DNA of 64,000 nt, from contig VJWM01000117.1 in NCBI GenBank assembly GCA_010909165.1, positions 62,001-126,000 on the forward strand. The letters run 5' to 3'. Position numbers and translations under genes: made by a program. Positions 15,871-49,828 of this stretch are shown piece by piece (position 1 is the first letter of the stretch; each line of letters opens with the position of its first letter). The stretch is from Anthoceros angustus. Its lineage: Eukaryota > Plantae > Anthocerotophyta. The notes beneath the pieces are model-generated. The model did not search any database. It was given only the letters and a program-made list of their open reading frames with translations, and was not told the DNA's origin.

Positions 15871-18800
15871 TCAGACTTGCTTAATGATATCCCCGACCAG
15901 AAAACTGTGCACCAGGCCGTCCAAGTCTGTCCACCAGCTTTGTCCCGGCTGCTTCCATGCCTTAATGCTCACTCTCATTCTCTGCATGGCCTGTGCTTGC
16001 TCCCACATTCGGGCTCTGGTGTATATGTTGGACATCAACACGTAGGCTGCTGCATCTTTCTTGTCTAGCTTCACTGCTTGGTCGAAAGCATGGCGTCCAA
16101 CCTCCACGTTGCTCCACTTTTGACAAGCCCCCAACAGAGTGTGCCAAACTGTGGTGTCAGGTGGTACGTGCATGCTCCTGACCAGGCCTTGTGCCTCGTC
16201 CAGTCGGCCTGCACGGCCCAGGAGACCCACCATGCATGCGTAGTGCTCCACTGTGGGGGCGATGCCACTGTGGCTGCTCATGCTTTCGAAGTATTCCCAC
16301 CCCTTGCTCACTAGGCCTGTATGACCGCAGACTGTTAATACACCAAGGAACGTGATGCTGTCTGGTTGTATGCCGTCCCCTCTCATTCTGCGAAGCAAGT
16401 CCAAGACCTCTTCACTGTCTCCTTGGTGGCTGTATCCTGCAATCAGTCCGTTCCAGGCGACGATGTTTCTTTCAGACAATGAATCAAACACCTGCCGTGC
16501 TTCAGCCATGCTTCCGGACTTTGCATACATGTTAATCAAACTGCCAGCAATAAATACATCAGCTCCAAATCCTTGCTGTTTGATCTGCGCATGTAGCTGC
16601 CTTCCCAAATGCAAAGCTGCCACATTTGCACATGCCTGCAGGAGGCAAACAAATGTCACAGAATCGGGCACAGCTACCCCGTCCTCTTGCATAGCACTGT
16701 AAAGGCGAAGGGCTTTGAGGCCCATTCCCTGCTGTGAATATCCTGCAATCAGAGCTGTCCATGTCACTACATCTTTTCGACCTAGACCGCCAAACACCCG
16801 CTGCGCATCATCTAGACTGCCACACTTTGAGTACATGTTCACCAAACTGTTGGCTACACTCACATCAGCTTCATGCCCTTGTTCTCGGATTTGGGTGTGG
16901 AGCTGCTTCCCCATCTCCAAAGCCAGGGCACCCACACACGCACATGCCTGCAGGAGGCACGTCAGTGTCACAGAATTTGGCACAGCTATGCCCTCTTCTT
17001 GCATGGCACTGTACAGTTGAAGGGCTTCCTTGCCCATGCCCTGCTGTGCGTATCCTGAAATGAGAGCAGTCCATGTCACCACATCTTTGTGACCAAGTCC
17101 ATCAAACACTCCCTGGGCATCCTCCAGGCTGCCGCACTTTGCATACATGTTCACCAAACTGTTGGCTACAAATACATCAGCTTGGTATCCTTGTTCTCTA
17201 ATTTGCACATGAAGCTGCTTCCCCATCTCCAAAGCTGGGGATCCCACACTTGCACATGCCTGCAGGAGGCACACGAATGTTACAGCATCAGGTGCAACGA
17301 TGCCTTCCTCTTGCATTGCACCGTAAAGACAAAGGGCTTCCTGGCCCATGCCCTGCTGGGAATATCCTGCTAGTAGAGTGGTCCAAATCATCACATCTTT
17401 TCTACCGAATTCGTCAAACACCCTCTTGGCATCTTTCAAGCTGCCACACTTTGCATACATGTTGACTAAACTATTGGCCACGAATGGATCCCCTTGAAGC
17501 CCTCGTTCCCTTATCTCCACATGAAGCTTCTCTCCACTGCCCCTTGCTGGTGGGCCCAAACTTGCACACGCCTGTAGGAGGGACACAAATGTCACAGAAT
17601 TGGGTGTCACAATGCCTTCTTCCTGCATCACCCTGTAAAGATCAAGGGCTTCCTCTCCCATACATTGCTGTGAATATGCAGCTATCATGGCACTCCACGT
17701 CACAACGTTCTTTTGCACAAGTCCGTCAAATACACCCCGAGCATCTTCTAGGTTGCCACACCTTGCATACATGCTTACCAAACTATTGGCTACAGACACG
17801 TCAGCCAGATGTCCTCCTTCTCTGATTTGAGCATGAAGATGTCTCCCCTTCTCTAATCCTGGTGTGCCCACACTTGCACATGCCTGCAGGAGGCATACAA
17901 ATGTCACTGAATTCGGTACGGCAATGCCTTCTTCCTGCATAGCACTGTAGAGCTGAAGGGCTTCCTGGCCCCTGCCCTGTTGAGAATACCCTGCAATTAG
18001 AGAAGTCCATGTCACCACATCTTTCTGACCTAATCTGCAAAACAATCTGTGGGCATCCTCTAGACTGCCACACTTCGCATACATGTTCACCAAGCTATTG
18101 GCTACAGACACATCAGCCAGATGTCCTTGTGCTCTGATTTGCTCATGGAGCTGCTTCCCCTTCTCCAGAGCAGGGTAGCCCACACTTGCACACGCCTGCA
18201 GGAGGCATACATAAGTCACAGAACTGGGTACAGCCATTCCTCCTTCCAGCATAACACTGTAGAGAAGAAGTGCTTCCTGCCCCATACCCTGCTGGGAGTA
18301 CCCGGATATCATGGTAGTCCACGTCACCAAGTCCTTCTCAACGAGTCCGTCAAACACCTTTCGAGCATCTCCCAAGCTGCCACACTTCCCATACACATCC
18401 ACCAGGCAATTACAAACAAACAAATCCCGCTCAAACCCGCTGGCCAACACATCAGCATGCAGCTCCTGAGCAGCCTTCAAATCTTCTCCCTTTGCACAAG
18501 CCTGGAGAGCTGCCACGAAAACATGGCTGTCGGGCTCCGCACCCGATCTGCGCATCCGACGATACAGCTCTACGGCGTGCCTGTGGAGTCCCCGTTTCAC
18601 ATGCGCTGAAATTATGGAAGACCACATAAAGGCATCTGGACTGACAACAACGGTGAACACATCCATCGCGTCTTGCAACCTGCCGTGAGAAGCATACAAT
18701 CGCAGAAGATGGTTGCCCAGGAACGTGTCCGACTGGTACCCCTTCTGAACCGTGAAAGCATGCACACGGCGCCCTAGAAGAAGATCCTTCTGGACAACAC

Positions 18801-19227
18801 ATCCCCTGAGCACAGTATACAGGAGAGATTTGGAAATGTGCCACCCTATTTGCACCAGAACTCCCAAAGCCTCGACAGCCTCCTTGAGCCGGCCCTCCTC
18901 ACACAGCTTGCTCACTGTTTCAGGCATCACGCCCATTCCGTATCCTCCAGACCTGGGAGGGTCAAGCTCGTATGCCACAGTGCGACGCAGGGAGCAGGAG
19001 CGAGCGGGAGCCGCAGCTCCAAGGCCAACAGTGGGACGCGCCAGGTACCATCGCAGGCCTTTCCCTCTAACTCCTCCCTGTCCGTGCCAGCACAGGCGCG
19101 TGCGGGACAGCCAGTGCCTGCCCTCCACCGGAAGACGCCGGACGCCCCGTCCCGCCCCGGAGCACATCTTCAACAGCTGAGCCTGTGACACTTGCAGCCC
19201 GTCTTTCCACCATGGATCCTCAAACAC
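15871..19227 (-). CDS. Intronless PLS-class pentatricopeptide repeat protein with E/E+ extension (organellar RNA-editing factor type)
   Basis: Repeated P-L-S triplets (DVVTWTALIAGYSQQG / PNSVTFVCLLQACA / DVSVANSLVNMYAKCG), E domain EHYACMVGLLGRAG..YVLMSNIY, and KQPGQSWWTD..VHSFLVGD followed by a stop. The exact start codon is uncertain. Confidence 0.95.
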   Translation of the reverse strand: MFEDPWWKDGLQVSQAQLLKMCSGAGRGVRRLPVEGRHWLSRTRLCWHGQGGVRGKGLRWYLARPTVGLGAAAPARSCSLRRTVAYELDPPRSGGYGMGVMPETVSKLCEEGRLKEAVEALGVLVQIGWHISKSLLYTVLRGCVVQKDLLLGRRVHAFTVQKGYQSDTFLGNHLLRLYASHGRLQDAMDVFTVVVSPDAFMWSSIISAHVKRGLHRHAVELYRRMRRSGAEPDSHVFVAALQACAKGEDLKAAQELHADVLASGFERDLFVCNCLVDVYGKCGSLGDARKVFDGLVEKDLVTWTTMISGYSQQGMGQEALLLYSVMLEGGMAVPSSVTYVCLLQACASVGYPALEKGKQLHEQIRAQGHLADVSVANSLVNMYAKCGSLEDAHRLFCRLGQKDVVTWTSLIAGYSQQGRGQEALQLYSAMQEEGIAVPNSVTFVCLLQACASVGTPGLEKGRHLHAQIREGGHLADVSVANSLVSMYARCGNLEDARGVFDGLVQKNVVTWSAMIAAYSQQCMGEEALDLYRVMQEEGIVTPNSVTFVSLLQACASLGPPARGSGEKLHVEIRERGLQGDPFVANSLVNMYAKCGSLKDAKRVFDEFGRKDVMIWTTLLAGYSQQGMGQEALCLYGAMQEEGIVAPDAVTFVCLLQACASVGSPALEMGKQLHVQIREQGYQADVFVANSLVNMYAKCGSLEDAQGVFDGLGHKDVVTWTALISGYAQQGMGKEALQLYSAMQEEGIAVPNSVTLTCLLQACACVGALALEMGKQLHTQIREQGHEADVSVANSLVNMYSKCGSLDDAQRVFGGLGRKDVVTWTALIAGYSQQGMGLKALRLYSAMQEDGVAVPDSVTFVCLLQACANVAALHLGRQLHAQIKQQGFGADVFIAGSLINMYAKSGSMAEARQVFDSLSERNIVAWNGLIAGYSHQGDSEEVLDLLRRMRGDGIQPDSITFLGVLTVCGHTGLVSKGWEYFESMSSHSGIAPTVEHYACMVGLLGRAGRLDEAQGLVRSMHVPPDTTVWHTLLGACQKWSNVEVGRHAFDQAVKLDKKDAAAYVLMSNIYTRARMWEQAQAMQRMRVSIKAWKQPGQSWWTDLDGLVHSFLVGDIIKQV

Positions 19228-30800: not shown

Positions 30801-33800
30801 TGTTAGAGTTAATTGTGTTTACCCTAACTCGGTTAGTGGTAGATTAGTTTAATTAGGGTTATCCTTGATATACTATTTAAACATGGACCAGTACTTTTTG
30901 TATTATTGCTCTTATTTTCAATATATGCTTCCGTTGTCTTTGTCATGGTATCAGAGCCATGGAATTTCTTTTTGCCACAATCCGTATTTTGTAGATGATT
31001 TGCTAGCCATTGTCTATGGGAAATTGTTGTGGAGATTTGCTGGTGTATTTATCTACTTGATAAATGCCTCATTTCTCACAATCTGATGGCGCGTCAGGGA
31101 AGATGTGTTTTGACGGATTCATTCTCGGTTTGCTGACAGGCTTGTGAATCAGCCATTGAGATCGGGCCGTGGTAGGAGATCACAACATGCTCTGTCACGG
31201 CGCGACCTGTTCTATGATGGGATGCAGGTGTCTCGGGAAGAATCCTAGCTGATTTCCTAGCCAGTTCAGATCAGAGGAGGAGAGCACCTGAATTCACGTC
31301 TCTTTCCCGGCTGGACAGCATCGAGACTCTGCTTAGGCGCATCCTGGATGAGCAGGCTAGGCAGGCGACCCGTCTCGATTGCTTCGCTGTTAGAATTGCT
31401 GGCTTACTGGAGATTTGGTGAGTCACAGGGCCGGAAATCATCTACTCAGTATTGCGACTGTGGCTGTCAATTGCGCCGAGACTTTATGGCGAAGGGAGCG
31501 CGGTGAAGATGCCGGCTTCCCTCCGCATCGCGATGCAGGATTGCTGTAACTCGGATCAGGATGGGCGCGGCACATGTGAGCGTGATCTGAAGCGGTGCTT
31601 GCCTTGCTTGGTCGCGGTGTGCGTCATCCTGTCGCGGGTGGTTTTAACGGAAACGAAATGGGTTCTTTTTAGGGCTTCGGTGCGCTTAAGTTGGCATATC
31701 GTTTCGGGTTCCTTTTTGGGGCTTTGGTGCGCTTAAGTTGGAATATCGGTTCGGGTGGCCTTTTAGGGCATTGATGCACTTAAGTTGGAATATCGTTTCG
31801 GGTTCTTTTTTAGGTCTTTGGTGCATTTAAGTTGTAATAACGTTTCGCTTTATAAGTTGAACCTGCTTTATGATGCGAAACGACTTGAGATTTCTTAGTT
31901 TCTTCTTTTAGAATAAGAACTCTTGTATAGTTTATCTTTGTAAGTCTAGAGTTTAGAGGTCATTTACCTTTCTTTCTAGATTGTGTATGTCGGACTCATC
32001 TTCCAGTAGTGAGCATGATGATGCAGTAAGACCAGATCCCTTGTACAGGGATGACTCTACTGACTCTGAAGCTGAGGAACAAGCTAGGTTAAATTCTCAA
32101 ATTGCTTCAACTTTTCAACAGTTAGCACGTTTGAATACAAATACCTCAGTTCCTCAACCTCTTCAGTCTAGACCCCCTGCTGTTCCATTCCCTCTTACCA
32201 TGACGTGCTAGTGGTGCTTTGACAACTCTTGGAGCTACCTATTGGTGAATTTAAGGAGAAGGACCGGTTTGATGGCAAAGCTTCCGTTATGAGAGCGTGC
32301 GGATGCGAGCATTCTTGGATGCCGAGATGTGGGAATATGTTGAGTTCTTTTCCTAAACACGATATCACAATTCCAGGTGTTACTCAAGACATGGTGGACA
32401 AGTGGAAAAAGGGGAACAAAATAGCTTTTGCTATTCTACTTTCAGGTCTAGATGAAACTACTGTTACGGAGGTGGAGTCCTTACCAACAACAGCTGAGGT
32501 TTGGACGCAGCTGAAAGATACATATTAGGTGCAAAATATTCTTACGCTTGTACATGCTAGGAATGAGTTTTATGGCCTGAAGCTGCGAGAAGGAGATCCA
32601 GTGGGACCACATATTGTGAAGTTCGCCATTTGCGATCTCAGCTAGCTCTTGGATCTAGTATGATCAAGTGGACGCATTGCTCAATTGCTATCCACTTACC
32701 TTTCTTTCGAACTTCGTGTCAAGCCAAAATACCTCCATTCGAGCTTCTTATCGGTGTGAGTGCTGGTAGACCTTCCCTTATAACGTTGAATGACTTGATT
32801 GGGGCTCTCAAGAGGAACAGTCGCCATAAGTCGTGGCCTTCGTCCCCGCCTCCGGGAGAAGGTGCTTTACGTTGCAAAAGGAAAAGGACCAGGCACAACA
32901 ATAAGAACAAGAAAGGAGTAGGTTTGTCCGCCGCCTCTTCGCTGACGGGGTGCTTGTAATCGTGTCAAATTGTGGCATTGGGAGCGTGATTGCAGAAGAA
33001 AAGGCAACCAAAGAAGGAAGTTCGTCCTTTGGCTCATGTTAGTACCAAGGAGCATCTTGGACAACAACATAAAAGCGTAGCCTGTGTTGTGTGTCTAATT
33101 TCGAGTAAGGAGAATTCATTTATGTGGTTTGTAGATTCCGGATCTACTTCGCACATTTGTAACAACAGGAAGCTATTTTCTAAGTTCAGCTATCAATCAC
33201 CTTTTCGTACTGTTTATGTTGGTGACTCTAGGGGACTAGAAGTGGAAGGTAGTGGTGAAGTTTGCATACCTTTGTTAGATGGTACAAGCTTGCTGCTTTC
33301 TGATGTGTTGTTTGTTCCTGCAATGAGCAAAAACTTGCTTTCTGTTAGAGCTGTTACTTCTGCTGGTGACTTTGGGTTTAGCTTTGAACATTTGCATTGT
33401 TATATGTATAGATTACAATTGCCAGGGAATTATGTTGCAAAGGCTACCTTAGTTGATGATTTGTATCAGCTTGATATTTCTCCTTGTACTTTTACTCCTA
33501 GTGCTCATGCTTTAGTAACCTCTTCTTCTCATCAAGCTAGCTTATGGCATGCACGTCTAGGTCATGTCAATAAGGCTAAGCTTAACTTGATGTCTCACTC
33601 GCTACCGAGAGAAGCTCCTTGTTTCAAGCACCTTGCTTCTGCAGGCGTGTATCTTGTCCAAGCAGAAGGAGCTTCCTTTTAAGAATCAATCGGCTACTCG
33701 AGCTAAAGCAGTTTTGGAGTTGATACATGCAGATCTAGCGGGAAAGCTTCCAGTGAAATCACTTGGTGGGTCCGAGTATTATCTTTCTCACGGATGATTT

Positions 33801-36800
33801 TTCACGCTATACATGGACCTTTCCTTGCGGTTGAAGAGTGACGCCTTTGAGCATATCTCCTCATGGATTCCTATGGTTCAAAGACAAACAGACATTTGGT
33901 CAAGTGCTTCCGACCGATAATGGTGGAGAGTTTTATCGCCATAGGTTTGATGGGCTTTTCAGATGGGATCATCGTCAACTTTCGCTTATACACAACAATG
34001 TAATGGAGTTGCTGAAAGGAAGAATCAAACCTTGATGGGAATGACTCGAGCATGTTGGCTTGGCGGTCTTCCTAAATCCTTTTGAGGCCGTAGTTGCGTT
34101 TACTTATATTTTGAATAGAGTTGTGACTTCACACTGGTTGCACGCCTTATGAAGCCTTTTGGGCGCAAGCCAAGTCTTCTTCATTTACGTGTTTTGGATC
34201 TCCGCTTTTGCATTCATTCCGAGGCCAAGAGGGGAAGTTAGATGCAAGGTCGAAGCCTCTTATTTTTCTTGGCTACTCGGAAGAATCCAAAGCATACAAG
34301 TTGTTTGATCCTCGACCTATAAGATGACGTTGGCGAGGAGTGTTACCTTTAAGGAGATCACTTCTCCACTTTCTTTCACTTTCTCGACGCTATGGATGAT
34401 GTGCAGGAGGATATGAGTGACCCTGTTCAGGTTATGTTTCCACAGACGGATGGAGCGTTGGATGGTGAACAGTTTCCTTTAGCTCCAACTGCTATGGTAG
34501 ATGATACTACCGCCATACCTGGTGTGGTTGATTCACCTGTTTCTGATGATGTGCAGTCCACTTCTTCTCATGCTTCCCTTGATGATGAGGTTGCTGGTCT
34601 TGATGAATCTTGTTCCCCTCCTGCAGCATCCCCGCCCCGATATTCATTGAGAGAGCGTCGTACTCGTGATCAGTGGATTGAACAGCCGTATCAGTCTATA
34701 GACTTTAGGAAGTCTTCAGCTAATGTAGCAGCTATTTCCATACCTGAGGTTAGACCGGATCCTCCATAGAGAAGCTTTAGATGGCCCGATGGGGAACATT
34801 GGCGGGTCTCCATAGCGAGATGAGTATAACTCTCTTGTTAAAAATAACACTTGGGAGCTTGTGGATCACACGGGAGAAAGCCTATAACTTGTAAATGGGT
34901 TTTTAAAACTAAGCTTAAAGCCGATGGCACTATTGCTAGATATAAGTCTAGATTGGTTGCTAGGGGCTTTAGTCAAATTCCGTGAATTGATTATGGAGAC
35001 ACCTTTAGTCCAGTTGTTAAGCCTCCATCATCCGCATACTTTTAGCTATGGGCTGGAGTTTAATTTAGAACTTCATCAAATGGATGTTTGTACTGCATGG
35101 TGAACTTGAGGAGGTTCTCTATATGACGCAATTTAAGGGTTTGTTAGTAAGAAGTTTCCAAAGAAGGTTTGTAAGTTGCTCAAGACTTTATATGGATTAA
35201 AGCAGTCCGAGAGCTGGTTTAAGCGGATTATGAAGTTTTGAAACGCTAGGTTCATTCATCCGGGCGATACAAATGTTTTCTATCTTTTAGCGCCTTGTTT
35301 GTAATCTTAGCTTTGTATGTGGATGATGCAATCCTACTTAGTAATAGTATGCGGATGGATGAAGTCAAGGCTATGTTGCGGTCGGAGTTCGAGATGACCA
35401 CTGTGGTCCTCTGGAGTTTTGTTTAGGAGTTCAAATCCTTAGAGAGGCAACAAGGGTTATTGTTCTTCATCAAACAAAATATTTTAAGGAAATATTAACA
35501 CGTTTCCATTTGGAGGATGCTCGACCGCAACAACTCCTTATTCGGGGGAGAAGCTTACGATAGAGCGCCTCCGATCGCGATAAGGAAGATATGTCTCCTC
35601 CTGCGTCAAGGGGTGTTTGATTTTCGTGCTAATTGGACTAGGCCGATATTTCCCGTTGTTGTTTCTCGGTTTCTTAAGAACCCGGTAAACCTCACGGAAT
35701 GTGAAGAGGATATATCGTTACCTCAAGGGTACATTGGCTTATGGTCTTCATTATACATCAAGTGGCAGAAAGATTTTACTCTTACATCCTTTGCTGCGGA
35801 TGGCATTGATGTCGACACTAGAAGGAGTTTGTCGGCTTATGCGTGCATTTTAGCTTCGAGTTAATCGGTCATGCAAGAAACAAGCGCCCTTGGCACTTTC
35901 TACGGAGGCCGAATATAAGGCACTAGCGATGCTTGTAAAGAGGTGGAATGGGAACGGCAATTTTGGATTCTATCAAGTTGACAGGAGGATGCCACTTCCT
36001 TGTTTTGTGACAATATGTCGCTATCGCTCTTGTTGCTAATCCTAGGTTTCATGCGAGAACAAAGCATATCGAGCTTTATCATCATTATATTAGGGATGTT
36101 GCGTAACGTGGTTTGGTCCGGTGCAATATGTGGCGACTTGAAAACGCGTCGATATATATTGACAAAGGGTCTTTCACAACCTAGGCATTTTAAGCATCTT
36201 GCTAGTTTGGGTTTAAGGAGTTTAAGCTCCCAACCCCTATATCAAAATCCGATTTTATATATATGAGGAGAGTGACACTTGGTTTTCTACAATATGGAAT
36301 TACTATCTAATTTTCAGCTATACTCTCCTATGTATTTTGGGATTTATGGACCGCAAAATCTGAACATAAGTGAAATGAGATTGGCGGCATGGTGGATGAA
36401 GCATCACTTTGTTATTCCCGCAGCGCAGATCGAAACACACAAATCGAAACGAAAACAACAATGCTTTAAAGGGAAACAGTCCGACCATGTGTGTTGCGAC
36501 GAAGTCTCAAGTCCCGTTGCCCTCATCTCGACTGGCTACCGCCTTTTGTATTTCTTCGTGAGTGGCTCTGGCTTGTGTTCATCCGCCTTGGACAAAGATC
36601 GCGATCGTCTTTTGTTGCGATTGAGCCTCGGAGTGCTGGTCAATCTTTTGGTTGCCGTGCACAGCAAGCCCGCCGCCGGTGGGCCATTCTCGTCACCCTT
36701 GGTGCCGACCGCATCCGGTGGCGCCTTTTTCGGGCGCGCTGAGTGTGGTGAGCGTGGCGCGATTCAGATCGCTGGAGGAGAATCGATCACGCCCACTGTG

Positions 36801-39400
36801 GTTCCCGGCGCATCGGACGCCATCGCTTGAGGTTGTCCTGTGAATCGCGTGGCATGGATTTTTCCGTCGCGATGCGGCGCCGCCAGTGGCGATCGTGGTG
36901 TTGGACGCGTGGCGACCTGCTGGTGTGCTATGGGTGTGATTTTAAGCTCTGCGGCACGCTTCGAGTGTCACGCTATCGAGAGAAATGTGTCCTTGGGCGC
37001 AGTGGAGTTAGTTTGCACGCTTGCTTGTGCTTTGTGTTTCCTCGTGTGTGGACTTGGTGTGGTGTTGTTTCGCGTGTGGCTTTAACTCCTTTTAACCTCG
37101 TTAGGTTAAGTGGGGTGTTAGAGTTAATTGTGTTTACCCTAACTCGGTTAGTGGTAGATTAGTTTAATTAGGGTTATCCTTGATATACTATTTAAACATG
37201 GACCACTTTTGTATTATTGCTCTTATTTTCAATATATGCTTCCGTTGTCTTTTGTCACCATATAGATATCATACATCCGCCATACACAATCCACCTTAAA
37301 CATCTCTAGGTCCTCTCCTTTTCCAATACTCAAACAACTTATTTCGTTTCACCATCGCTATATTGTACATCCTCGTTCTCCAAGAGCTTCCCACATATGG
37401 TTACGCCACTGTGGGGGATACGGGTCTTCATCATCTTGTTGTGCTTCTAACTCTCCAACATGTATACAAAAACTATGAAGTGCAAACAAGTTATGAGACT
37501 TGCGGGGCATACTTCAAGCGAACATTAAGATTCTTGATCACGCCATTTATTCTTCAGCAGTGCAAAGGCATTCTCCACCTTCACTCTGCCTCTTCGCAAA
37601 GACCGGTTGAAAAGTTTTTGAGTGCGGTCTTCCCCTGTTGCATGAAACGGTTTCATGAGGAAAGGCATTAATGGATATGCACTATCACCTAAAATGTAAG
37701 GAGTTATTTCAACTAATTGGACTAGGCCGGATATTTCTTATCTTTGTCGGTGTTGTTTCTCGGTTTCTTAAGAACCCGTAAACCTCACGGAATCGTGAAG
37801 AGGATATATCGTTACCTCAAGGGTACATTGGCTTATGGTCTTCATTATACATCAAGTGGCAGCAAAGATTTTACTCTTACATCCTTTGCAGACTGGATGG
37901 GCGGTGATCGACACTAGAAGGAGTTTGTCGGCTTATGCGTGCATTTTAGCCGGAGTGGCGGTCATGCAAGAAACAAGCGTCCTTGGCACTCTCTTCTACG
38001 GAGGCCGAATATAAGGCACTAAGCGATGCTTGTAAAGAGGTGGAATGGGAACGGCAATTTTGGATTCTATCAAGTTGACACGGAGGATGCCACTTCCTTG
38101 TTTTGTGACAATATCCGGCTATCGCTCTTGTTGCTAATCCTAGGTTTCATGCGAGAACAAAGCATATCGAGCTTTATCATCATTATATTAGGGATGTTGC
38201 GTAACGTGGTTTGGTCCGTGTGCAATATGTGGCGACTTGACGTTATATATTGACAAAGGGTCTTTCACAACCTAGGCATTTTAAGCATCTTGCTAGTTTG
38301 GGTTTAAGGAGTTTAAGCTCCCAACCCCTATATCAAAATCCGATTTTATATATATGAGGAGAGTGACACTTGGTTTTCTACAATATGGAATTACTATCTA
38401 ATTTTCAGCTATACTCTCCTATGTATTTTTGGGATTTATGGACCGCAAAATCGAACATAAGTGAAATGAGATTGGTCACTGGTGGATGAAGCATCACGGC
38501 TTTGTTATTGATCGCGGAGACACACAATCGAAACGAAAACAACAATGCTTTAAGGAAACAGTCCGACCAGTGTGTTGCAACGAAGTCTCAAGTCCCGTTG
38601 CCCTCATCTCTTCGACTGCTACCGCCTTTTGTATTTCTTGGCGTGAGTGGCTCGGCTTGTGTCTTCATCGGCCTGACGATCGCGATCAGTCTTTTGTTGC
38701 GATTGAGCCTCGGTGACTGGTCAATCTTTCGGCTTTGGTTGCTGCCGTGCACAAATCTGCAAGCTCGGCGGGTATGGGCCATTCTCTGGTCACCCTTGGT
38801 GCTGACTCTGCATCTGTTGCTGGTGGCGCCTCCTTTTTCTTGCTGTGGCGCTGGAGTGTGGTGAGCGTGGGGCGCGATTCAGGACTGCTTGGTGGAGAAT
38901 CGATCACGCCCGACAGTTTGTGGTTCCTGGCGCGCCATCGGACACCACTGGCTTGAGGTTGTCCCAGGAATCGGAGTGCGCGGCATGGATTTTCTGTCGC
39001 GGGACGGTGTGGCGGTATGGCGGTCGTGGTGTTGGACGGTGGTGACTGCGGTGTGCTATGGGTGTGATTTTAAGCTCGGGCGTGCTTCGTTTAGTGTCCT
39101 GCTGCTATCGCGAGAAATGTGTCCTTGGTGCGCGGTGGAGTTAGTTTGCACGCTTGCTTGTGCTTTGTGTTTCCTCGTGTGTTTACGGACTTGGTGTGGT
39201 GTTGTTTCGTTCGTGTGGCTTTAACTCCTTTTAACCTCGTTAGGTTAAGTGGGGGTGTTAGAGTTAATTGTGTTTACCCTAACTCGGTTAGTGGTAGATT
39301 AGTTTAATTAGGGTTATCCTTGATATACTATTTAAACATGGACCAGTACTTTTTGTATTATTGCTCTTATTTTCAATATATGCTTCCGTTGTCTTTGTCA
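30801..39400 (+). mobile_element. Full-length Ty1/copia LTR retrotransposon with a duplicated 3' end (LTRs 30801-30945, 37116-37257, 39256-39400)
   Basis: 145-bp TG..CA LTRs, PBS TGGTATCAGAGCC (30946-30958), TSD CCATA, protease WFVDSGSTSH, LWHARLGH, integrase TDNGGEF, RT YVDD and RNase H remnants, and a purine tract before the 3' LTR. Confidence 0.95.
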
Positions 39401-39863
39401 CCATATAGATATCATACATCTGCCATACACAATCCACCTTAAACATCTCTAGGTCCTCTCCTTTTCCAATACTCAAACAACTTATTTCGTTTCACCATCG
39501 CTATATTGTACATCCTACGTTCTCCAAGAGCTTCCCACATATGGTTACGCTCAGCTTCGTGCAGGGGATACGGGTCTTCATCATACTGTTGTGCTTCTAA
39601 CTCTCCAACATGTATACAAAAACTATGAAGTGCACAACAAGCTATGACGACTTGCGGGGCATACTTCAAACGAACATTAAGATTCTTCAGAATACGCCAT
39701 TTATTCTTCAGCAGTGCAAAGGCATTCTCCACCTTCACTCTGCCTCTTCGCAAAGACCGGTTGAAAAGTTTTTGAGTGCGGTCTTCCCCATACGTAAACG
39801 TTTCATGAGGAAAGGCATTAATGGATATGCACTATCACCTAAAATGTAAGGAGTTATTTCAAC
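35629..39863. repeat. ~2.1-kb tandem duplication (35629-37713 / 37713-39863)
   Basis: The copia RT/RH end, 3' LTR, TSD and the Harbinger 3' end each appear twice, differing by many small indels. Confidence 0.9.
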
Positions 39864-41974: not shown

Positions 41975-43485
41975 ATGGGGGCTTCCGTGAAGATGGAGGT
42001 GATCACCAGGAGGGAAACCATGGTGCCTCCTGCCCAAGAGACGCCACGAGTGGCGCTCTGGGCCTCCAATGTGGACCTCATCATCCCGCAGATCCACACC
42101 TCCAGCGTCTACTTCTACAGGCCCAGCGGCAGCCCCGATTTCTTCTCGGGCGATGTCCTGCGGGACGCCCTGGCCAAGGCCCTTGTCCCCTTCTACCCCA
42201 TGGCGGGCAGGCTGGCGCGGGACGAGGACGGCCGCATCCAGATCAACTGCAACGCCGCGGGCGTGCTGCTGGTGGAGGCCGAGGCCGACGTCGGCATCGA
42301 CGATCTTGGCGGCTTCGCGCCCCACCCCGTGCTGCAGCAGCTGGTTCCCACCGTCGTCTACTCCAAAGACATCACGGCATTCCCCCTGCTGGTCCTCCAG
42401 GTTAGCTACGCGAGACGGGGTAAATCAACTTCCTTGTTTACCTCAGCCCGAGTCCCTGTAAACCGGAGTCCTGTCCCTTCCCTGCCTGGATCCTGGATCA
42501 GCGTCTTTGTGAATTGGAGTCCTGTCCCCTCCTTGCCTCAATCAACGTCTTCGGGAATCCGAGTGTTATGTTTTGGCTCGTCTGGCAGGTGACGCGATTC
42601 AAGTGCGGCGGCGCATCCCTGGGCGTGGGGATGGAGCACCACATTGCGGACGGGATGTCCGGCATCCACTTCATCAACACCTGGTCGGACGTGGCCCGGG
42701 GGGAGGGCGTAAAGGTGCTGCCCTTCGTGGACCGGACGCTGCTGAAGGCGCGGTCGCCGCCCACGCCGCTGTTCGAGCACGTCGAGTACCAGCCGCCCTT
42801 CACGCTGCAGCCGCGGTTCCGGCCGGAGGAAGGTTCCGGGAAGGTGGAGACCGTGGTGGAGAGCTTCACCTTCTCCAGGGAGCAGCTGGGGAAGCTCAAG
42901 GCTAAGGTGGCCGACCCCGGGGCTAACCTGGCGTATAGCAGCTACGTGGCGCTGTCCGCGCACATCTGGAGGTGTGCCACCCGCGCAAGAGGACTGAGCG
43001 GGGACCAGAACAGCAAGCTCTTTGTGGCGACAGACGGGAGGGCCAGGCTGCGGCCGCCTCTTCCCCAGGGATACTTCGGGAATGTCATCTTCACCTGCAC
43101 GCCGGTGGCGGAGGCCGAGGAGCTGGTGGCCAAGCCGCTGATCCACACGGCGGGGAGGATCCACGAGGCTGTGCTGCGGATGGGGGATGAGTATCTCCGC
43201 TCTGCCCTGGACTACCTCGAGCTCTTGCCTGACATGTCTGTGTGCATCAGAGGAGCTGCCCATTTCGGGAACCCTAATTTGTGCATCACCAGCTGGTCGG
43301 GCCTGCCTGTTTACGACTGTGACTTCGGATGGGGCCGGGCTATTTACATGGGTCCCTGCCAGATTGGGTTCGAGGGCCTCTGCTTCGTGCTCCCCAGTGC
43401 CACCAAGGACGGTTCCCTGGGCCTTGCTCTCAGACTCCGGGCTGACCACATGGCTGAGTTTAGAAAGCTTGTGACTGACATTTGA
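41975..43485 (+). CDS. HCT: BAHD acyltransferase, hydroxycinnamoyl-CoA transferase-like (exons 41975-42400 and 42589-43485)
   Basis: HTSSVYFY, LVPFYPMAGRL, PLLVLQ|VTRFKCGG with the conserved Q intron, HXXXD motif (HHIADG) and DFGWG. Confidence 0.93.
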
Positions 43486-43564
43486 TGATGCTGCACCAGC
43501 AGCAGCAGCATGTAGCAGCGTTAAATGCTCTTCTGCTTTTAGATGAACCTGCTGCAAATGTAGA

Positions 43565-43725
43565 GCAGGGTTTCATGATTTCCGTCACAACAAAGAGTTC
43601 ATCACGTGGCACTTTTTTTCAGAGCAGGGTCACATGATTTGCGTCACAACAGAGTGTTCATCACGTGGCACTTTTTTTCAGAGCAGGGTCACATGATTTG
43701 CGTCACAACTAATAGTTCATCATGG
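43565..43725. repeat. ~60-bp tandem repeat, about 2.7 copies, in the HCT 3' region
   Basis: agagcagggtcacatgatttgcgtcacaac repeated. Confidence 0.9.
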
Positions 43726-43746
43726 TTATGGCATACCAAAGAGGAC

Positions 43747-46564
43747 TATGGAATACCGATCTGGTCATGCGGCATCCACATTTTTTTAGGGTTATGGACA
43801 GAAAGAAATAGTCCCACCGCATACGGCGGAACTATTTCGGCATGTCATGCATGACCACATCGGTTGTGGCTGCCCCGGTGTCGATGTGGTCAACCTACCA
43901 CATGATACACAAAATGCTCCCACGACACGTAAACTTTTCTTCTTTTGGGGTTAGGGTTGCGTTGCGGTCATTTGCGTTGCCGCGCCATTGCGGCATGCAA
44001 CATACCATGTCCGCGACCAGCATCCACAAGGTGGGTTGCCGGTTGCGTTAGCGGCGCTTCTGGTATGGAATGGCGTTGCTTGTCAAACCGCCTCTCTTTG
44101 CAACGCGGCTTAGTCGTTGCCCTTGCGTGCAAAGCAGATGTTGTTGGCGCATCGGGCGCAACATTTCTGCGCTGCGCTCACGGTGGTGCGGTTTCACATA
44201 GCACCAACTTCGAAACAAGCTTGTACCGGAAGGACCAACAAAGACGGGCTTCCATGAAAGCGATCGCACATACAATTCTTGCACCAAAAGCTGCGGGCAC
44301 AAGCGTACGGTTCAAAGGGCCTCTTGGACTACGAGCGGTGATCCCTATCACGCAGCGGTAACCCGACTTCTCCCGCTGCGAGGTACCGGGCGATTGCCTC
44401 CCCGCTCCACACCTCGCATAATGCGATGTAGTGCGGTGTACATATCGGGAGGAAGTCCATGCCTCCAAGCCCCTTCGCGCCAAAATGTCCCTCGCGACAT
44501 GCGAGTTCACCGCGCGCCATGATCGCGCAGCGTTTGAGTATCGGCGGTGCAATGCTCAAGGGATGGAACCTTACATGAGCGAAGGCTTGCTGCAACCTAC
44601 ACACAAAGACAAGTGTCTGCGGCCAAGACTCGCCCGGACAACAGCTCAATCACGCCTAGCAGTGGCATCTCGGGGCCACGTTCTGTGCATATTGAGGACC
44701 ACAGGCATCGAACTCCTCGCCATCGTCATCCGCGGTCCCATATGCGGGTGGCGAACCGCCTTGAGCCGAGCCTCTTCACGGGCAGCTAGGGCACATGGCC
44801 GGGATGTCCGTCGGCCCTTATCCTGCGCACCCTGTGCCTGTTGCACACCTGCCTCCAACGTTCCAGCTCCGCCCTCATGGTGGGCATGAAGGTGAAATGC
44901 AGGGAATGGATGTGCCAGGGGTTGGTGATGTCCAATTCGCTACTCCTCACCAAATCCATCATGTACCCCTTGTACAGGAACGCCCACTTCTCCCCCAATG
45001 ACCGCCAAAAATGCTCAATCCTCTGCAGACAGGCCGCAGTTACTACCCCGCACCATACGTCCTCGTTGACAAAGGCATCGCAAGCAACCACAGTCTGACC
45101 TGGTTGTACACGGAGGGGCTGCGGATGAAGTTGCTGCCGTGTGCCCTTGGCCTCGCACGGTTCATGTCCGCCTCTATCAGGTTGTGCTCTGCTGCATAGT
45201 CCGACCGAATCCGCTGGGGATGGCCAAACCTCCTCATTGCATCCACATAGGCGTTGAAAATGGTTGTCCCCTGCTTGTTATCTTCCAGCACCAACCATGG
45301 GATGTAGTGGGTGGCCCCATCTATTGCACCATGGACTCTGAAGTATAATTGGTACAGCTTGTCATAGGCTACACACAATCCAACCACATCCATTTCGGTG
45401 ACAACTGCAGCAATCGCTCCCATTCCAATCTAGCGCACAGCACACACCGCAGCAAACTGCTGGAACCACTCACAATCCATGTGCCACATGAACATGGGCG
45501 TCGTGTTGGTGTACTGCACGCGGTGGATGCGGACCGTCGAGCGGTGGGCCATGTCCTCCGGCTGCATCAACCGCAGCGCCTCCGTCACCTGCCTCCTTGG
45601 ACGCTACCAAAACTCCAAACCGCCTGGAAGATATCCAGGTACCACTCCTCCACCAACTCCTCCGCTTCTTCCAGCCAGGGTCCAAAGTCGGGGTATCGTT
45701 TGGTGACGATGTTGCGCTCCACCAAGCGCCAGGGCTCCCACACTTCCGCCGCCTTCTTGGCCCCATTGCTGCGTTCGCGGTGTTCGGTTGCTGAGGGTGG
45801 AGGCTTCGCCACTCTCCGTTCTCCTGCCGCTGAGTCAATTGCTCCGGTCGCCAAGGCAGGTTACTCGCAAAGATGTTCGGGCGCTTGAAGAGACAACGCC
45901 AAAGAGCAGGGTGTCTTAGCGCGAGAGACTGCGAAAACCGTCGCGAAGTGGCCTGAAAGAATGACCTTCGCTTGGGGTGGCGACGTCGAGAGTAACCGAA
46001 GCGTTGATGGGCGTCCCTTCGCTGCCAGCCGAGGAGGCATGCATGGCACTCTGTATACGCCGCTTACCTCTTCCGCCCGCTGCTCACGCTGGCGCCACAG
46101 CCGGGCGTGAATACCGCCATAACGGCAGCAACCCTACGGTCTTGGTCGCATGCCTGCCCACCTCTGATGCCCACGTGGCCCCGCCTGCCCAAAATACGCT
46201 CCCAACTCCCAAGTTACTTTACTTGGCATACTTATCCTGTCTTACTCCGGAGTGTAGTCCGGACTTACCGCAGGTACTCAAAATCGTTTCCGCCCGGTGT
46301 CGCCCCATAGCCGCCCGGAGGTCCGAGCCCCTCTGCCCACTCTGGAGTGCAGTCCAGAGTACTCCGACCTTATTTCTCCCTTTCCGCCTTATTTTCTACT
46401 CGACACCTACGAAAAAAACAAAACCTAGTTCATTTCCTACCCAAGGGAAGAGTTTGTGGCCCACAGTGAGTATCTAAAAGATTCTGTGGCATATTCTCGT
46501 AGCGTACACCGAAAAAAAAGAAAGTCACACACACACTCCCGTGTGACTAGATCGGTATTCCATA
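43747..46564 (-). mobile_element. Inner IS3EU-type DNA transposon carrying the transposase
   Basis: 21-bp TIR TATGGAATACCGATCT(G/A)GTCA with one mismatch and 6-bp TSD GAGGAC (43741-43746, 46565-46570). Confidence 0.9.
44786..45854 (-). pseudogene. Spliced IS3/integrase-core DDE transposase (introns 45473-45369 and 45099-45023)
   Basis: The spliced product reads EALRLMQPE..RIHRVQY..MWHMDSYDKL..VHGAIDG..HPQRIRSD..SVYNQRIEHFWR..LHFTFMP..CNRHRVR. There is a frameshift near 45590. Confidence 0.85.
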
Positions 46565-49124
46565 GAGGACTCCAATTCACAAAGACGCTGATCCAGGACG
46601 GGGCACAAAGACGAGAAATTGCCGAGGAATCCAATAAAGTGCCCCGAGGGGACGGGGCACTTTATTTCGCCTGCGAAACTTTTCTTCATACCACACGGTA
46701 TAAAGAAAAGTTGGTAACCCGACTGAATTGAGGTTGCTCAAAGTGGCCGCACCAAAGCGGCCACTTCGCAAGCACTCTTACACACAAACCGAACCCCTCT
46801 TTTTCAGGCATTGCGGGTCCTTTGCGCGCATGCGCAACAAAGATTTTTTTTTGCAGACGTAGAGTTGTAGATTATGAGGGCGGCAGGTGCCCGTGGCAAG
46901 CCAAGGCGGCCGATTTTAGGGTTGAGCTGGTACCAAGGTGGGAGCGGGGTAGCGGGTTGGGCTAGTTTCGGGGTGGTAGCCAAGCCGTCCCTCTCTTAGG
47001 GCTTTAGGGCAGGGGCGAGGCACGCAGGCGGCACGGGGCGAGCAGGGGTTTCAGGCTTGCCCCTCCAAAGCGCCTTGCAACGTACCACAATTTTGATTTG
47101 CATTTGTGTTTAGGCTTGCGCCCGTCAAGTACCCTTCACTTGCCATAGCTTTCCAGTACCTATGCGTTCAAGCTTGCCCATTGAGGCACCGCAGTGCACC
47201 CTGGGGCCTCCTTCAACATCAATTTTGCCATGGCTATGCGTTTAGGTTTGGCCCCGTGAGGCACCACGACACTTCCTTCTTTGCCATGCATGGTGTGGAG
47301 GGGGCTAACGCCAACAGTGTTAGCAGCAATCGCGGTGGGAGAGTAGGATTGGAGCGCGCCTGTGCGCTTGCGGAAGGCAATGTACGGGAAGAATCAGCAA
47401 TTCCAACGGTGGCGGTATCTCGACGAGAGCGTGGCAGCAGCGACGAGGCCCTGGAGAGGCTACGGAGGCGAGGAGCGGGAGGGGTCAGTGAATAGCTGTG
47501 GAGGCGTGATCTGGCACACCGGAGGAGGAGGAGCAAGGGGGGCTGACAGTGGCGGAGCGGAGGCGATGTCGGAAGGAGAGGGAGAGCGGAGTGAATATAC
47601 AAACCCAACTCCGCGAAGGGCGAGCATAAGAGGGAGAAAGCGAGACTACACGGAGTCGGACACAGTGTCAGAGGAGGAAGCGCGGTGCCCAAGGCGGGTG
47701 CCAGAAACACCGAATGCCCGAACACTGGCTTCTAGAGGCGGTGTTACGGGCGAATGGGATCTGAGGGTAACATTGCGTGGGATGCAGAGCGCCGTTTAGG
47801 CAATGGAGGCCACGCTGAATGGCCTCCGCATGAGCATGAAGGCCATGGAGGACGCGATGGAGTAGACTTGGTCCTCAACCCTAGGGCTTGGAGTTGCACC
47901 AGCAGCTCTTATATGCTTTGTGTTAGGGGAGGCGAAGGATGCGCCGTAGGAAGGCTGCGATAGGAATTAGAGTATGATGCAAGCTGTGCAATTTTACAAT
48001 GTGTGCTATTGATATCCTTTTTTTATGAATGGCATGGCTTCCCTTTGCTGTGAACTTGTGCTCGTTGCTGGCCCATGGATACGATCTTGGTCAGGCTGTA
48101 ATATAGACGCTGGTGCTGGTGTGGCTAATTGCTGCAGATGCTGGAAGTTCAGGTGCTGGAGTGCTGATAGCTGCTGATGCTAGAAGATGTGGTGCTACCC
48201 TTTGCAAATCTCGGTCTTTCTACTACAGGAGACTCAACAGGTGCCTTCTGTGTGTCAACAGCTGCCTGCAAGTCTGCTGCTTGGTTCCCTTCATCCAGGA
48301 TGTGGCGAAGGATACTGCCACAATTGCATACTTGACTGCGAGGCCATTTCCACTAGGCAAGTCAATAGCATCCATTCTTGCAGCCTGGCCGCGTCTTTGG
48401 TTGCTTGTAGCCTCAACATCTCAATAGCTTTATCTGTATTTTGAGTCTCTTCTTCTCTTTATCAAAGCATTCACGGACTGGCTGATTGCTACTGATGTTG
48501 GAAGTTCATGTAGTGCCATGGCTGAGTGCTAATGTTGGAAGTTCAGGCATTGTTGTGGCTAATTGCTGGAGGTCTGCCGTTTTCGCTTACGCTGATTGCA
48601 TTTGTGTGAAGGAGAGAAGATGTGAAACCCGCATGAAGTTGAGGGCACAGTTGGTGTTGTGACTCTCTCTGTGCATGACAGGAAGCTGTTAAGTTACGGT
48701 ATACTAGCCTGCAGACTTGTCAAGCTTCAAGGATTAGCTGATAAATAGGACGTTTGCGACCATCATGTGCAGGATGCAGTTTGGGATCAGCTGATGGCCA
48801 GCTACAATAATCTAGTGGGAATGCACGGTCTCAATTTGTCGTAGACTTGGTAGTAGGGAAGGGTTGGAAGCATGGTGTTGTTCAAAAACTTGGGCATGAT
48901 GTGGAGATTGAGTTGTTTGGACGATGTTGAGGGCACCCAAATGTATGCGGAGCTATCTCAGAAGCTGTGAAGACCCTAACTCAGAAGCTCTAAAGGTTGC
49001 TTGCATGTCCCATCACCATCCCCTTTTCCTGTTTCAAGCACGATCTTGTTTCTTTCTTCTATGTAAATCTCGGGTTCCCCAAGAAAAAGACCAATCCAAT
49101 GTCACTTGCTTAGAAGATGCGGAC

Positions 49125-49325
49125 ACGGCCGCGGCCGCGGTCGAGATAGGGTTGGAAGACCATGGCCGCGGCCGCGGCCGAGATAGGGTTGGAAGACCAT
49201 GGCCGCAGCCGCGGTCGAGATAGGGTTGGAAGACTATGGCCACGGCCACGGCCAAGATAGGGTTGGAAGACCATGGCCACAGCCAAGATAGGGTTGGAAG
49301 ACCATGGCCGCAGCCGAGGTAGGGT
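49125..49325. repeat. Tandem ~25-35-bp repeats gatagggttggaagaccatggccgc, about 6 copies
   Basis: Visible in the sequence. Subterminal within the outer IS3EU-type element. Confidence 0.92.
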
Positions 49326-49828
49326 TTGGCAACCAAATGGGGCGGCGAGCGCGGCTGCCGAGTTGGGGTTTGACGGCTATGTGATAGCATTGAAGAAAAC
49401 AGAATCGTATAGGGTAGGGCGGGAGACTCTTAAAACATAGTGTCACAGTCTCTCAGAGTGCCTCTTTGTTTTTACGTTAAAAGTGTTGAAAGGTTTTGAA
49501 GCATAGACACGTTTAGAAGAAAAAAAAGTGTGTCCCCTTGGTGCTTGGCCGCTCTTGGTTAGGGCGCCAAAGTGGACATGCCGTTTAGGGTGGTGAGGTA
49601 GCACCTCCGTACTAGATTCGGTGGTATATTCTTATAGATGCCTACGATCGACATTGTGGGCGACAGTATGAGTTTCGGCCAAAAAGTGCCCTATCCCTCT
49701 CGTCTCATGGTATGCCATACATGGTATGGTTGAGAGATGAAGTGGAGCAGCGTCACATGCACAAAAAGGTTGTATCGAATTGTCCATGACACGCCATTGG
49801 ATCAATCGGCAGCAAAGGTAGTATTGGA

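Follow-up and report, generated by a model that had tools for sequence, protein, structure and literature searches.

A stretch of 64,000 nucleotides from the genome of the hornwort Anthoceros angustus (GenBank assembly GCA_010909165.1, contig VJWM01000117.1, positions 62,001 to 126,000 of the forward strand) was analysed and is referred to below as the window; coordinates are those of the window unless another locus is named. At positions 43747-46564 it very probably contains a structurally complete DNA transposon of the IS3EU/GingerRoot superfamily, the transposase gene of which is probably defective. The element has a length of 2818 bp and a GC content of 56%. It combines the features by which IS3EU/GingerRoot elements are recognized, namely a 6-bp target-site duplication (TSD), TA..TA termini and an integrase-type DDE core with an intact DD35E triad. 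What is new is the hornwort as a host lineage, as the superfamily itself is already known in land plants. Our literature search found no paper naming IS3EU or GingerRoot in hornworts.

Element ends and nesting

The element was bounded by terminal inverted repeats (TIRs) and flanked by a perfect TSD, and it was nested in a second element. The features at the ends were as follows:

43727-49719, unstranded: enclosing (outer) element with 12-nt TIRs, TATGGCATACCA..TGGTATGCCATA, and the TSD CATGGT at 43721-43726 and 49720-49725
43741-43746, unstranded: left TSD copy, GAGGAC, identical to 46565-46570
43747-43772, plus strand: left TIR, TATGGAATACCGATCTGGTCATGCGG, 21 nt with one mismatch or approximately 26 nt at 89% identity
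43849-43864, minus strand: single inverted recurrence of the TIR's inner 16 nt, in subterminal position and with one mismatch
46539-46564, minus strand: right TIR
46565-46570, unstranded: right TSD copy, GAGGAC

The 21-mer at the left end, TATGGAATACCGATCTGGTCA (43747-43767), was matched with one mismatch by the right end (46544-46564, minus strand), and the inverted repeat of this inner element stretched to approximately 26-27 nt at 89% identity. In none of 100 shuffles of the window did the 21-mer pair yield two matches. The subterminal copy of the TIR core is possibly an extra transposase-binding site.

Both nested elements had the termini TATGG..CCATA. The insertion point of the inner element was 20 bp in from the left terminus of the outer one, which measured approximately 3.17 kb once the inner insert was subtracted and which contained no recognizable transposase gene within 43727-49719. 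At its own site, the duplication of the inner element could be read as 6, 7 or 8 bp, both flanks being aGAGGACt; the context of the CATGGT duplication allowed 6 bp only. Because the enclosing element has the same termini and a strictly 6-bp duplication, the ambiguity was settled in favour of 6 bp. At 42491-42522, 32 nt of subterminal sequence from the outer element occurred a second time. This copy was uninterrupted across the insertion point of the inner element and so provides an internal 'empty site' control on a small scale.

The 32-nt copy was without the terminal TATGG, was situated in a presumed intron just upstream of an exon of the hydroxycinnamoyltransferase gene HCT, and adjoined a short GGGACAGGACTCC direct repeat. 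The outer element held arrays of 37-39-nt tandem repeats (48110-48196, 48495-48567 and 49127-49320) and was itself located in a 59-bp tandem repeat (43562-43722), approximately 240 bp downstream of the HCT gene.

A scan of metagenome contigs with a 16-mer of the TIR returned 120 loci, all of them chance matches, since the bases past the 16-mer agreed at the random rate; four loci labelled as human-gut metagenome were set aside. Two TATGGAATTACT... sites at 36293 and 38384, raised by the TIR scan of the window, were rejected as TIR copies. They are part of a tandem duplication (35629-39863, approximately 2.1 kb, copies 89% identical) that is unrelated to the transposon and explains their occurrence.

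Transposase gene

The Pfam family rva_4 (PF24764, 'integrase core domain') matched two open reading frame (ORF) pieces on the minus strand, with profile positions 18-109 in exon 3 (E = 3e-14) and 103-170 in exon 4 (E = 4.6e-10). The exons were searched singly and were also compared with a local profile built from 26 full-length homologues. The gene was resolved into the following parts:

45474-45603, minus strand: exon 2 to the limit of homology, RPRRQVTEALRLM...MFMWHMD, with the first catalytic aspartate (D1); local profile 187-229, E = 2e-9
45369-45473, minus strand: intron 1, 105 bp, GTGAGT..TAG, phase 1, splitting a Ser codon directly after catalytic D1
45100-45368, minus strand: exon 3, YDKLYQ...SVYNQ, which includes the IDG strand and, within RSD, a catalytic D; local profile 230-317, E = 2e-28
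45023-45099, minus strand: intron 2, 77 bp, GTCAGA..CAG, phase 0, between NQ and RIE
44789-45022, minus strand: exon 4, RIEHFW...NRHRVR, with the catalytic E; local profile 317-385, E = 8e-13

Exon 2 was also matched by phmmer with moss and Selaginella exons, with E-values of 4e-8 to 3e-6. Read from the sequence, with a slash marking each splice site, the junctions were ATG GAT T/GTGAGT ... TGTAG/CC TAT GAC for intron 1 and AAC CAG/GTCAGA ... CTGCAG/AGG ATT GAG for intron 2. Exons 2, 3 and 4 matched the local profile collinearly and no profile position was missing at either junction, which confirms both predicted GT-AG introns by homology. The motifs WHMD, IDG, RSD and NQ/RIE were all found. 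The DD35E triad consisted of the D in WHMD, the D in IRSD after 56 residues and the E in RIE after a further 35 residues. A search of solved structures by sequence gave no relevant match. No HHCC zinc-finger or GPY/F modules were detected in the transposase, the N-terminal domain itself being unrecognizable in this copy, and no cargo gene was found in the element.

An earlier note, made from the sequence alone, had described a 2818-bp element with 21-bp TIRs and the 6-bp TSD GAGGAC, two GT-AG introns of 105 and 77 bp and the motif set WHMD / IDG / RSD / NQRIE. These points held: the repeats differ by one mismatch and did not arise in the shuffled windows, the introns agree with both the splice junctions and the gap-free profile matches, and every motif is present.

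An integrase core between inverted repeats might also be a fragment of an integrase from a long terminal repeat (LTR) retrotransposon, a Ginger element or a Polinton, caught between repeats that match by chance. All these integrases are of one fold, and the classical rve model (PF00665) gave a weak match on exon 3 (2.4e-4, below its own cut-off). However, rva_4 scored far above rve and all homologues tested carried rva_4. The ORFs and sequence within 43747-46564 contained no LTRs, reverse transcriptase or other pol-type domains, and 2.8 kb is too small for a Polinton. The TIRs and the TSD are far beyond chance, and a Selaginella relative described below is bounded by the same termini. We therefore regard a stray integrase fragment as extremely improbable and treat the locus as a DNA transposon with its own transposase gene.

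State of the copy

The ends of the element were intact, and its transposase gene is probably defective, as judged from the reading frame. The continuous homologous frame spanned the catalytic core only, from 45603 to 44789, and was bounded by two lesions:

45588-45607, minus strand: frame break, where TAG at 45604-45606 closes the homologous frame and no in-frame Met lies upstream
44786-44788, minus strand: TAG stop within a motif that relatives conserve, at which the homologous frame ends

At its beginning (45603), the hornwort frame reads RPRRQVTEALRLM, where moss relatives have RPPRRTVARAL and VPRRKVAFPL. At its end, the hornwort sequence is GHVP followed by the stop, compared with SHVPARYF in moss and SHVPANLF in Selaginella. 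The intact spliced ORF that the earlier note had implied was thus not recovered: the frame opens after one TAG and closes at another within a conserved motif. An autonomous element is expected to encode a DNA-binding N-terminus, a core and a C-terminal part in one unbroken coding sequence, and no such sequence was present.

In the moss and Selaginella relatives, an N-terminal helix-turn-helix shares an exon with WHxD. Upstream of 45603, no N-terminal domain was found with Pfam, NCBIfam, the 26-sequence profile or phmmer with the moss and Selaginella exons. The only protein-like upstream ORF (45588-45860) was in a different frame from the core and was not significantly similar to the part of the relatives that contains the helix-turn-helix. 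A frame shift at the TGA at 45588-45590 was rejected, as the moss sequences place the homologous frame from 45603 on. Programmed -1 frameshifting of the IS3 kind was likewise rejected, since there was no slippery heptamer at the break.

The protein-like ORF lies directly upstream of the core, and between 46133 and 45588 one frame stays almost open. Together with the perfect TSD and the near-perfect TIRs, this would suit an intact autonomous element, in which the break and the stop are assembly indels or unrecognized introns and a divergent N-terminal DNA-binding domain is encoded around 45600-46130. We consider such an element unlikely. The upstream ORFs resembled neither the N-terminal exons of moss and Selaginella nor the 26-sequence profile to a significant degree, and the introns that could bridge the break at 45588-45607 would measure merely 17-41 nt. 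The stop at 44786-44788 interrupts a motif that three relatives conserve, and a C-terminal exon common to two moss loci (E = 2.6e-16) had no counterpart in the remaining 1 kb of the element. Furthermore, the neighbouring host ORFs in the window (a 1118-aa PPR protein and HCT exon 2) were uninterrupted, so that the lesions are more likely real than assembly errors. A transposon with intact ends and a probably defective transposase gene is thus the reading that we carry forward.

Relatives and phylogeny

A phmmer search with exon 3 gave 335 matches among 1.84 billion cluster representatives. As the best of these reached an identity of only 47-53%, no close relative is recorded. The nearest named relatives were four rva_4 proteins of Selaginella moellendorffii, and more distant matches came from a jellyfish, an acorn worm and the basidiomycete yeast Sporobolomyces. 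The rva_4 domain was detected in all nine long matches scanned, which comprised named relatives and others. Close relatives were also encoded on several long contigs of one ENA assembly (ERZ25073694; loci L003 and L004). The uL4 gene on the L004 contig was 92-94% identical to uL4 of Ceratodon purpureus, which identifies it as a moss contig. A further conserved C-terminal exon, without a Pfam match, was present at L003 6724-7179 and L004 6630-7007.

One Selaginella moellendorffii relative could be placed in an element of its own (locus L001, 8744-13159, GL377582.1). This element was 4.4 kb long, had 54-nt TATGG..CCATA TIRs and encoded EFJ27351.1, the truncated protein under which its transposase gene is annotated. 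The copy had decayed, with an in-frame TGA and with AT replacing the GT donor of intron 2. The ends of the moss (L003 and L004), acorn-worm and yeast elements were also sought, and the search returned AT-rich noise only.

Trees were constructed from exon 3 (87 columns, 154 sequences) and exon 4 (69 columns, 59 sequences) with FastTree and Shimodaira-Hasegawa-like (SH-like) supports. In both, the hornwort sequence was placed with a moss/metagenome group and then with Selaginella, with SH-like supports of 0.88 and 0.94 for exon 3 and 0.92 for exon 4. Animal and fungal sequences with a label (cnidarian, hemichordate and yeast) fell outside the plant grouping in both trees. The earlier note had proposed such a tree. 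The one obtained groups the hornwort protein with moss and Selaginella rva_4 genes to the exclusion of the labelled animals and fungi, in a sampling without reference sequences of Repbase IS3EU, S. lepidophylla GingerRoot, Ginger, IS3 or LTR integrases.

Intron positions

Intron 1 was found at the identical nucleotide in all five plant loci (GAY T/GTRAG ... AG/CN), in each case splitting a Ser codon. Its length varied as follows:

Selaginella L001: 59 nt
Hornwort, the present window: 105 nt
Moss L004: 106 nt
L003, from the same assembly as L004: 107 nt
L002 (metagenome): 158 nt

Intron 2 (phase 0, before RIE) was present in the hornwort, in Selaginella L001 (65 nt), in L003 and in L002. It was absent from moss L004, where it has been lost, and from the acorn worm. 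The positions and phases common to the moss and Selaginella copies suggest that the lineage has probably been in land plants since before their split. Long residence in land plants is therefore favoured over recent transfer. The earlier note had left the origin open between retention from an ancestor and horizontal acquisition; the grouping with moss and Selaginella and the sharing of introns favour retention. It had also taken the host-sized introns as a sign of long residence. This argument stands in a refined form, in which the inherited positions carry it and the lengths, which vary between hosts, do not.

Outside the plants, the gene of the yeast Sporobolomyces pararoseus (L006 1060-1180) contained a 65-nt intron at the position and in the phase of plant intron 1 (GAC G/GTAAGT ... 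CAG/GT). The yeast gene was interrupted elsewhere too, and not at the intron-2 site. In the gene model of the acorn worm Ptychodera flava (L005 5740-7320), an intron of approximately 1.5 kb was located 3 nt upstream of the intron-1 position. Many metagenomic homologues were single long ORFs and so lacked both introns. The introns near D1 in the yeast and the acorn worm either go back to an old intron of the superfamily or were gained in parallel at a GAY/G site.

These data bear on a recent horizontal acquisition by the hornwort from a fungus or an animal, the hosts in which IS3EU is best known. The basidiomycete yeast is among the neighbours just outside the plants in the exon-4 tree, it has intron 1 as well, and IS3EU is patchily distributed among eukaryotes (PMC10045372). 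Nevertheless, the closest sequences were those of moss and Selaginella, and both introns were common to those plants. The branching of hornwort with moss and then lycophyte is compatible with the host phylogeny, and at a best identity of 47-53% no recent donor is visible. A recent transfer consequently appears very unlikely, and inheritance within land plants is preferred.

It is conceivable, and we suggest it only tentatively, that intron 1 (phase 1, after the first catalytic Asp) is ancestral to the transposase genes of eukaryotic IS3EU/GingerRoot elements. If so, the superfamily would have arisen once and long ago in eukaryotes, and its transmission in land plants would have been vertical from a time before the split of hornworts, mosses and lycophytes, with hornworts as a previously unreported host. 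The observation of conserved introns may be new; the paper describing GingerRoot mentions neither hornworts nor transposase introns (PMC6839031). Common intron positions offer a simple marker, independent of protein trees, by which vertical descent can be separated from horizontal transfer in IS3EU/GingerRoot.

Proposed history of the insertion

The following course of events would account for the present arrangement. An element bounded by TATGG..CCATA inverted repeats would have been inserted by a DD35E transposase with an integrase (RNase H-like) fold. A staggered cut of 6 bp in the target, followed by repair, would have produced the GAGGAC duplication. The insertion would have landed in another element of the same superfamily, one without a recognizable transposase gene. 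The present copy is most likely immobile on its own and would rely on a transposase from another copy. Both the cut-and-paste chemistry and this dependence on a transposase supplied in trans are what we infer from the structure of the locus.

Neighbouring genes

Three further features were recorded in the window:

15874-19227: PLS-type PPR gene with an E motif, an uninterrupted ORF of 1118 codons
32990-33682: ORF with Copia-type Pol beta-barrel and GAG-pre-integrase domains
42514-43485: second exon of an orthologue of HCT (a hydroxycinnamoyltransferase of the BAHD type), with 94% identity to the enzyme cloned from Anthoceros agrestis; the gene ends at 43485

For HCT, the next-best matches after Anthoceros agrestis were at most 68% identical, which identifies the host as a hornwort near A. 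agrestis yet distinct from it. An exact look-up of the PPR protein returned no record. The domains of the ORF at 32990-33682 point to an LTR retrotransposon remnant.

Classification and comparison with known systems

IS3EU has been listed in Repbase since 2013; its elements have TA..TA termini and TSDs that usually measure 6 bp (PMC10045372), and the IS3EU elements of rusts end in TAYGG..CCRTA (PMC12730594). GingerRoot was described in 2019 by Cerbin et al. from Selaginella lepidophylla, and relatives are held by mosses, lycophytes and aquatic animals (PMC6839031). It likewise has 6-bp TSDs and TA..TA termini (PMC10045372; PMC6839031), and IS3EU and GingerRoot form one lineage with 99% bootstrap (PMC10045372). 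The assignment to IS3EU made in the earlier note agrees with the TAYGG..CCRTA termini, the 6-bp TSD and the rva_4 transposase with its DD35E triad. Its view that IS3EU lies outside the land-plant repertoire was out of date: GingerRoot was reported from mosses and lycophytes in 2019 (PMC6839031) and counted among eight DNA-transposon superfamilies of plants in a 2022 paper (PMC9804982). The note had itself named membership in a catalogued plant superfamily as grounds for giving up its claim, and as GingerRoot is already catalogued in plants, the novelty claimed for the superfamily falls.

Several points weigh against the classification and the assessment of the copy given here. The superfamily label rests on the termini, the TSD, the Pfam family, the host range of the relatives and the literature. 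The trees are short (87 and 69 columns) and have SH-like supports only. The flanks of the Selaginella L001 element agree over 5 bp (GAGAG), not 6. The TIRs of GingerRoot measure 100-150 bp, compared with 21-26 nt in the hornwort element, and this length is a trait of the S. lepidophylla elements at the level of the family, not of the superfamily. Finally, the term 'defective' depends on a correct assembly at two sites.

With this element, hornworts join mosses and lycophytes as hosts of IS3EU/GingerRoot. A presence in these three lineages fits an early land-plant origin followed by loss in seed plants. For the annotation of this genome, elements with TATGG..CCATA termini and 6-bp duplications can be treated as a known family, of which this compact copy displays the core gene structure. 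The find is a fairly ordinary one and leaves the understanding of DDE transposons unchanged.

The hornwort element can be distinguished from the integrases of Ginger1, Ginger2/TDD and LTR retrotransposons. These share its integrase fold and DDE chemistry; however, they have HHCC and GPY/F modules and their best Pfam match is rve, whereas that of the hornwort protein was rva_4. The prokaryotic IS3 family resembles the element in its DD35E transposase with an RNase H fold, its short TIRs and its short TSDs. Unlike the hornwort element, IS3 elements have TG..CA ends, TSDs of 3-5 bp and two ORFs joined by programmed -1 frameshifting, and they are free of introns.

The catalytic core of IS3EU is, like that of the hornwort element, related to IS3/IS481. 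The IS3EU elements of Repbase (Kojima 2023, PMC10045372; 2025, PMC12730594) further share termini of the TAYGG..CCRTA type and 6-bp TSDs with it. The Repbase families that these two papers treat have animal and fungal hosts, whereas the present host is a hornwort. In the rust IS3EU elements, the TIRs exceed 30 bp and cargo is frequent, for example TET/JBP and alpha-kinase genes, whereas the hornwort element is free of cargo. GingerRoot of S. lepidophylla resembles it in residing in a non-seed land plant and in its 6-bp TSD, TA..TA termini and integrase-type DDE transposase; at 3.9-12.9 kb, GingerRoot elements are larger than the 2.8 kb observed here. The Selaginella L001 element differs from the hornwort copy in its 54-nt TIRs, its length of 4.4 kb, its introns of 59 and 65 nt and the 5-bp GAGAG match of its flanks. 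It shares with it the TATGG..CCATA termini, an rva_4 transposase approximately 50% identical over exon 3, the positions and phases of both introns, and the decay of the copy.

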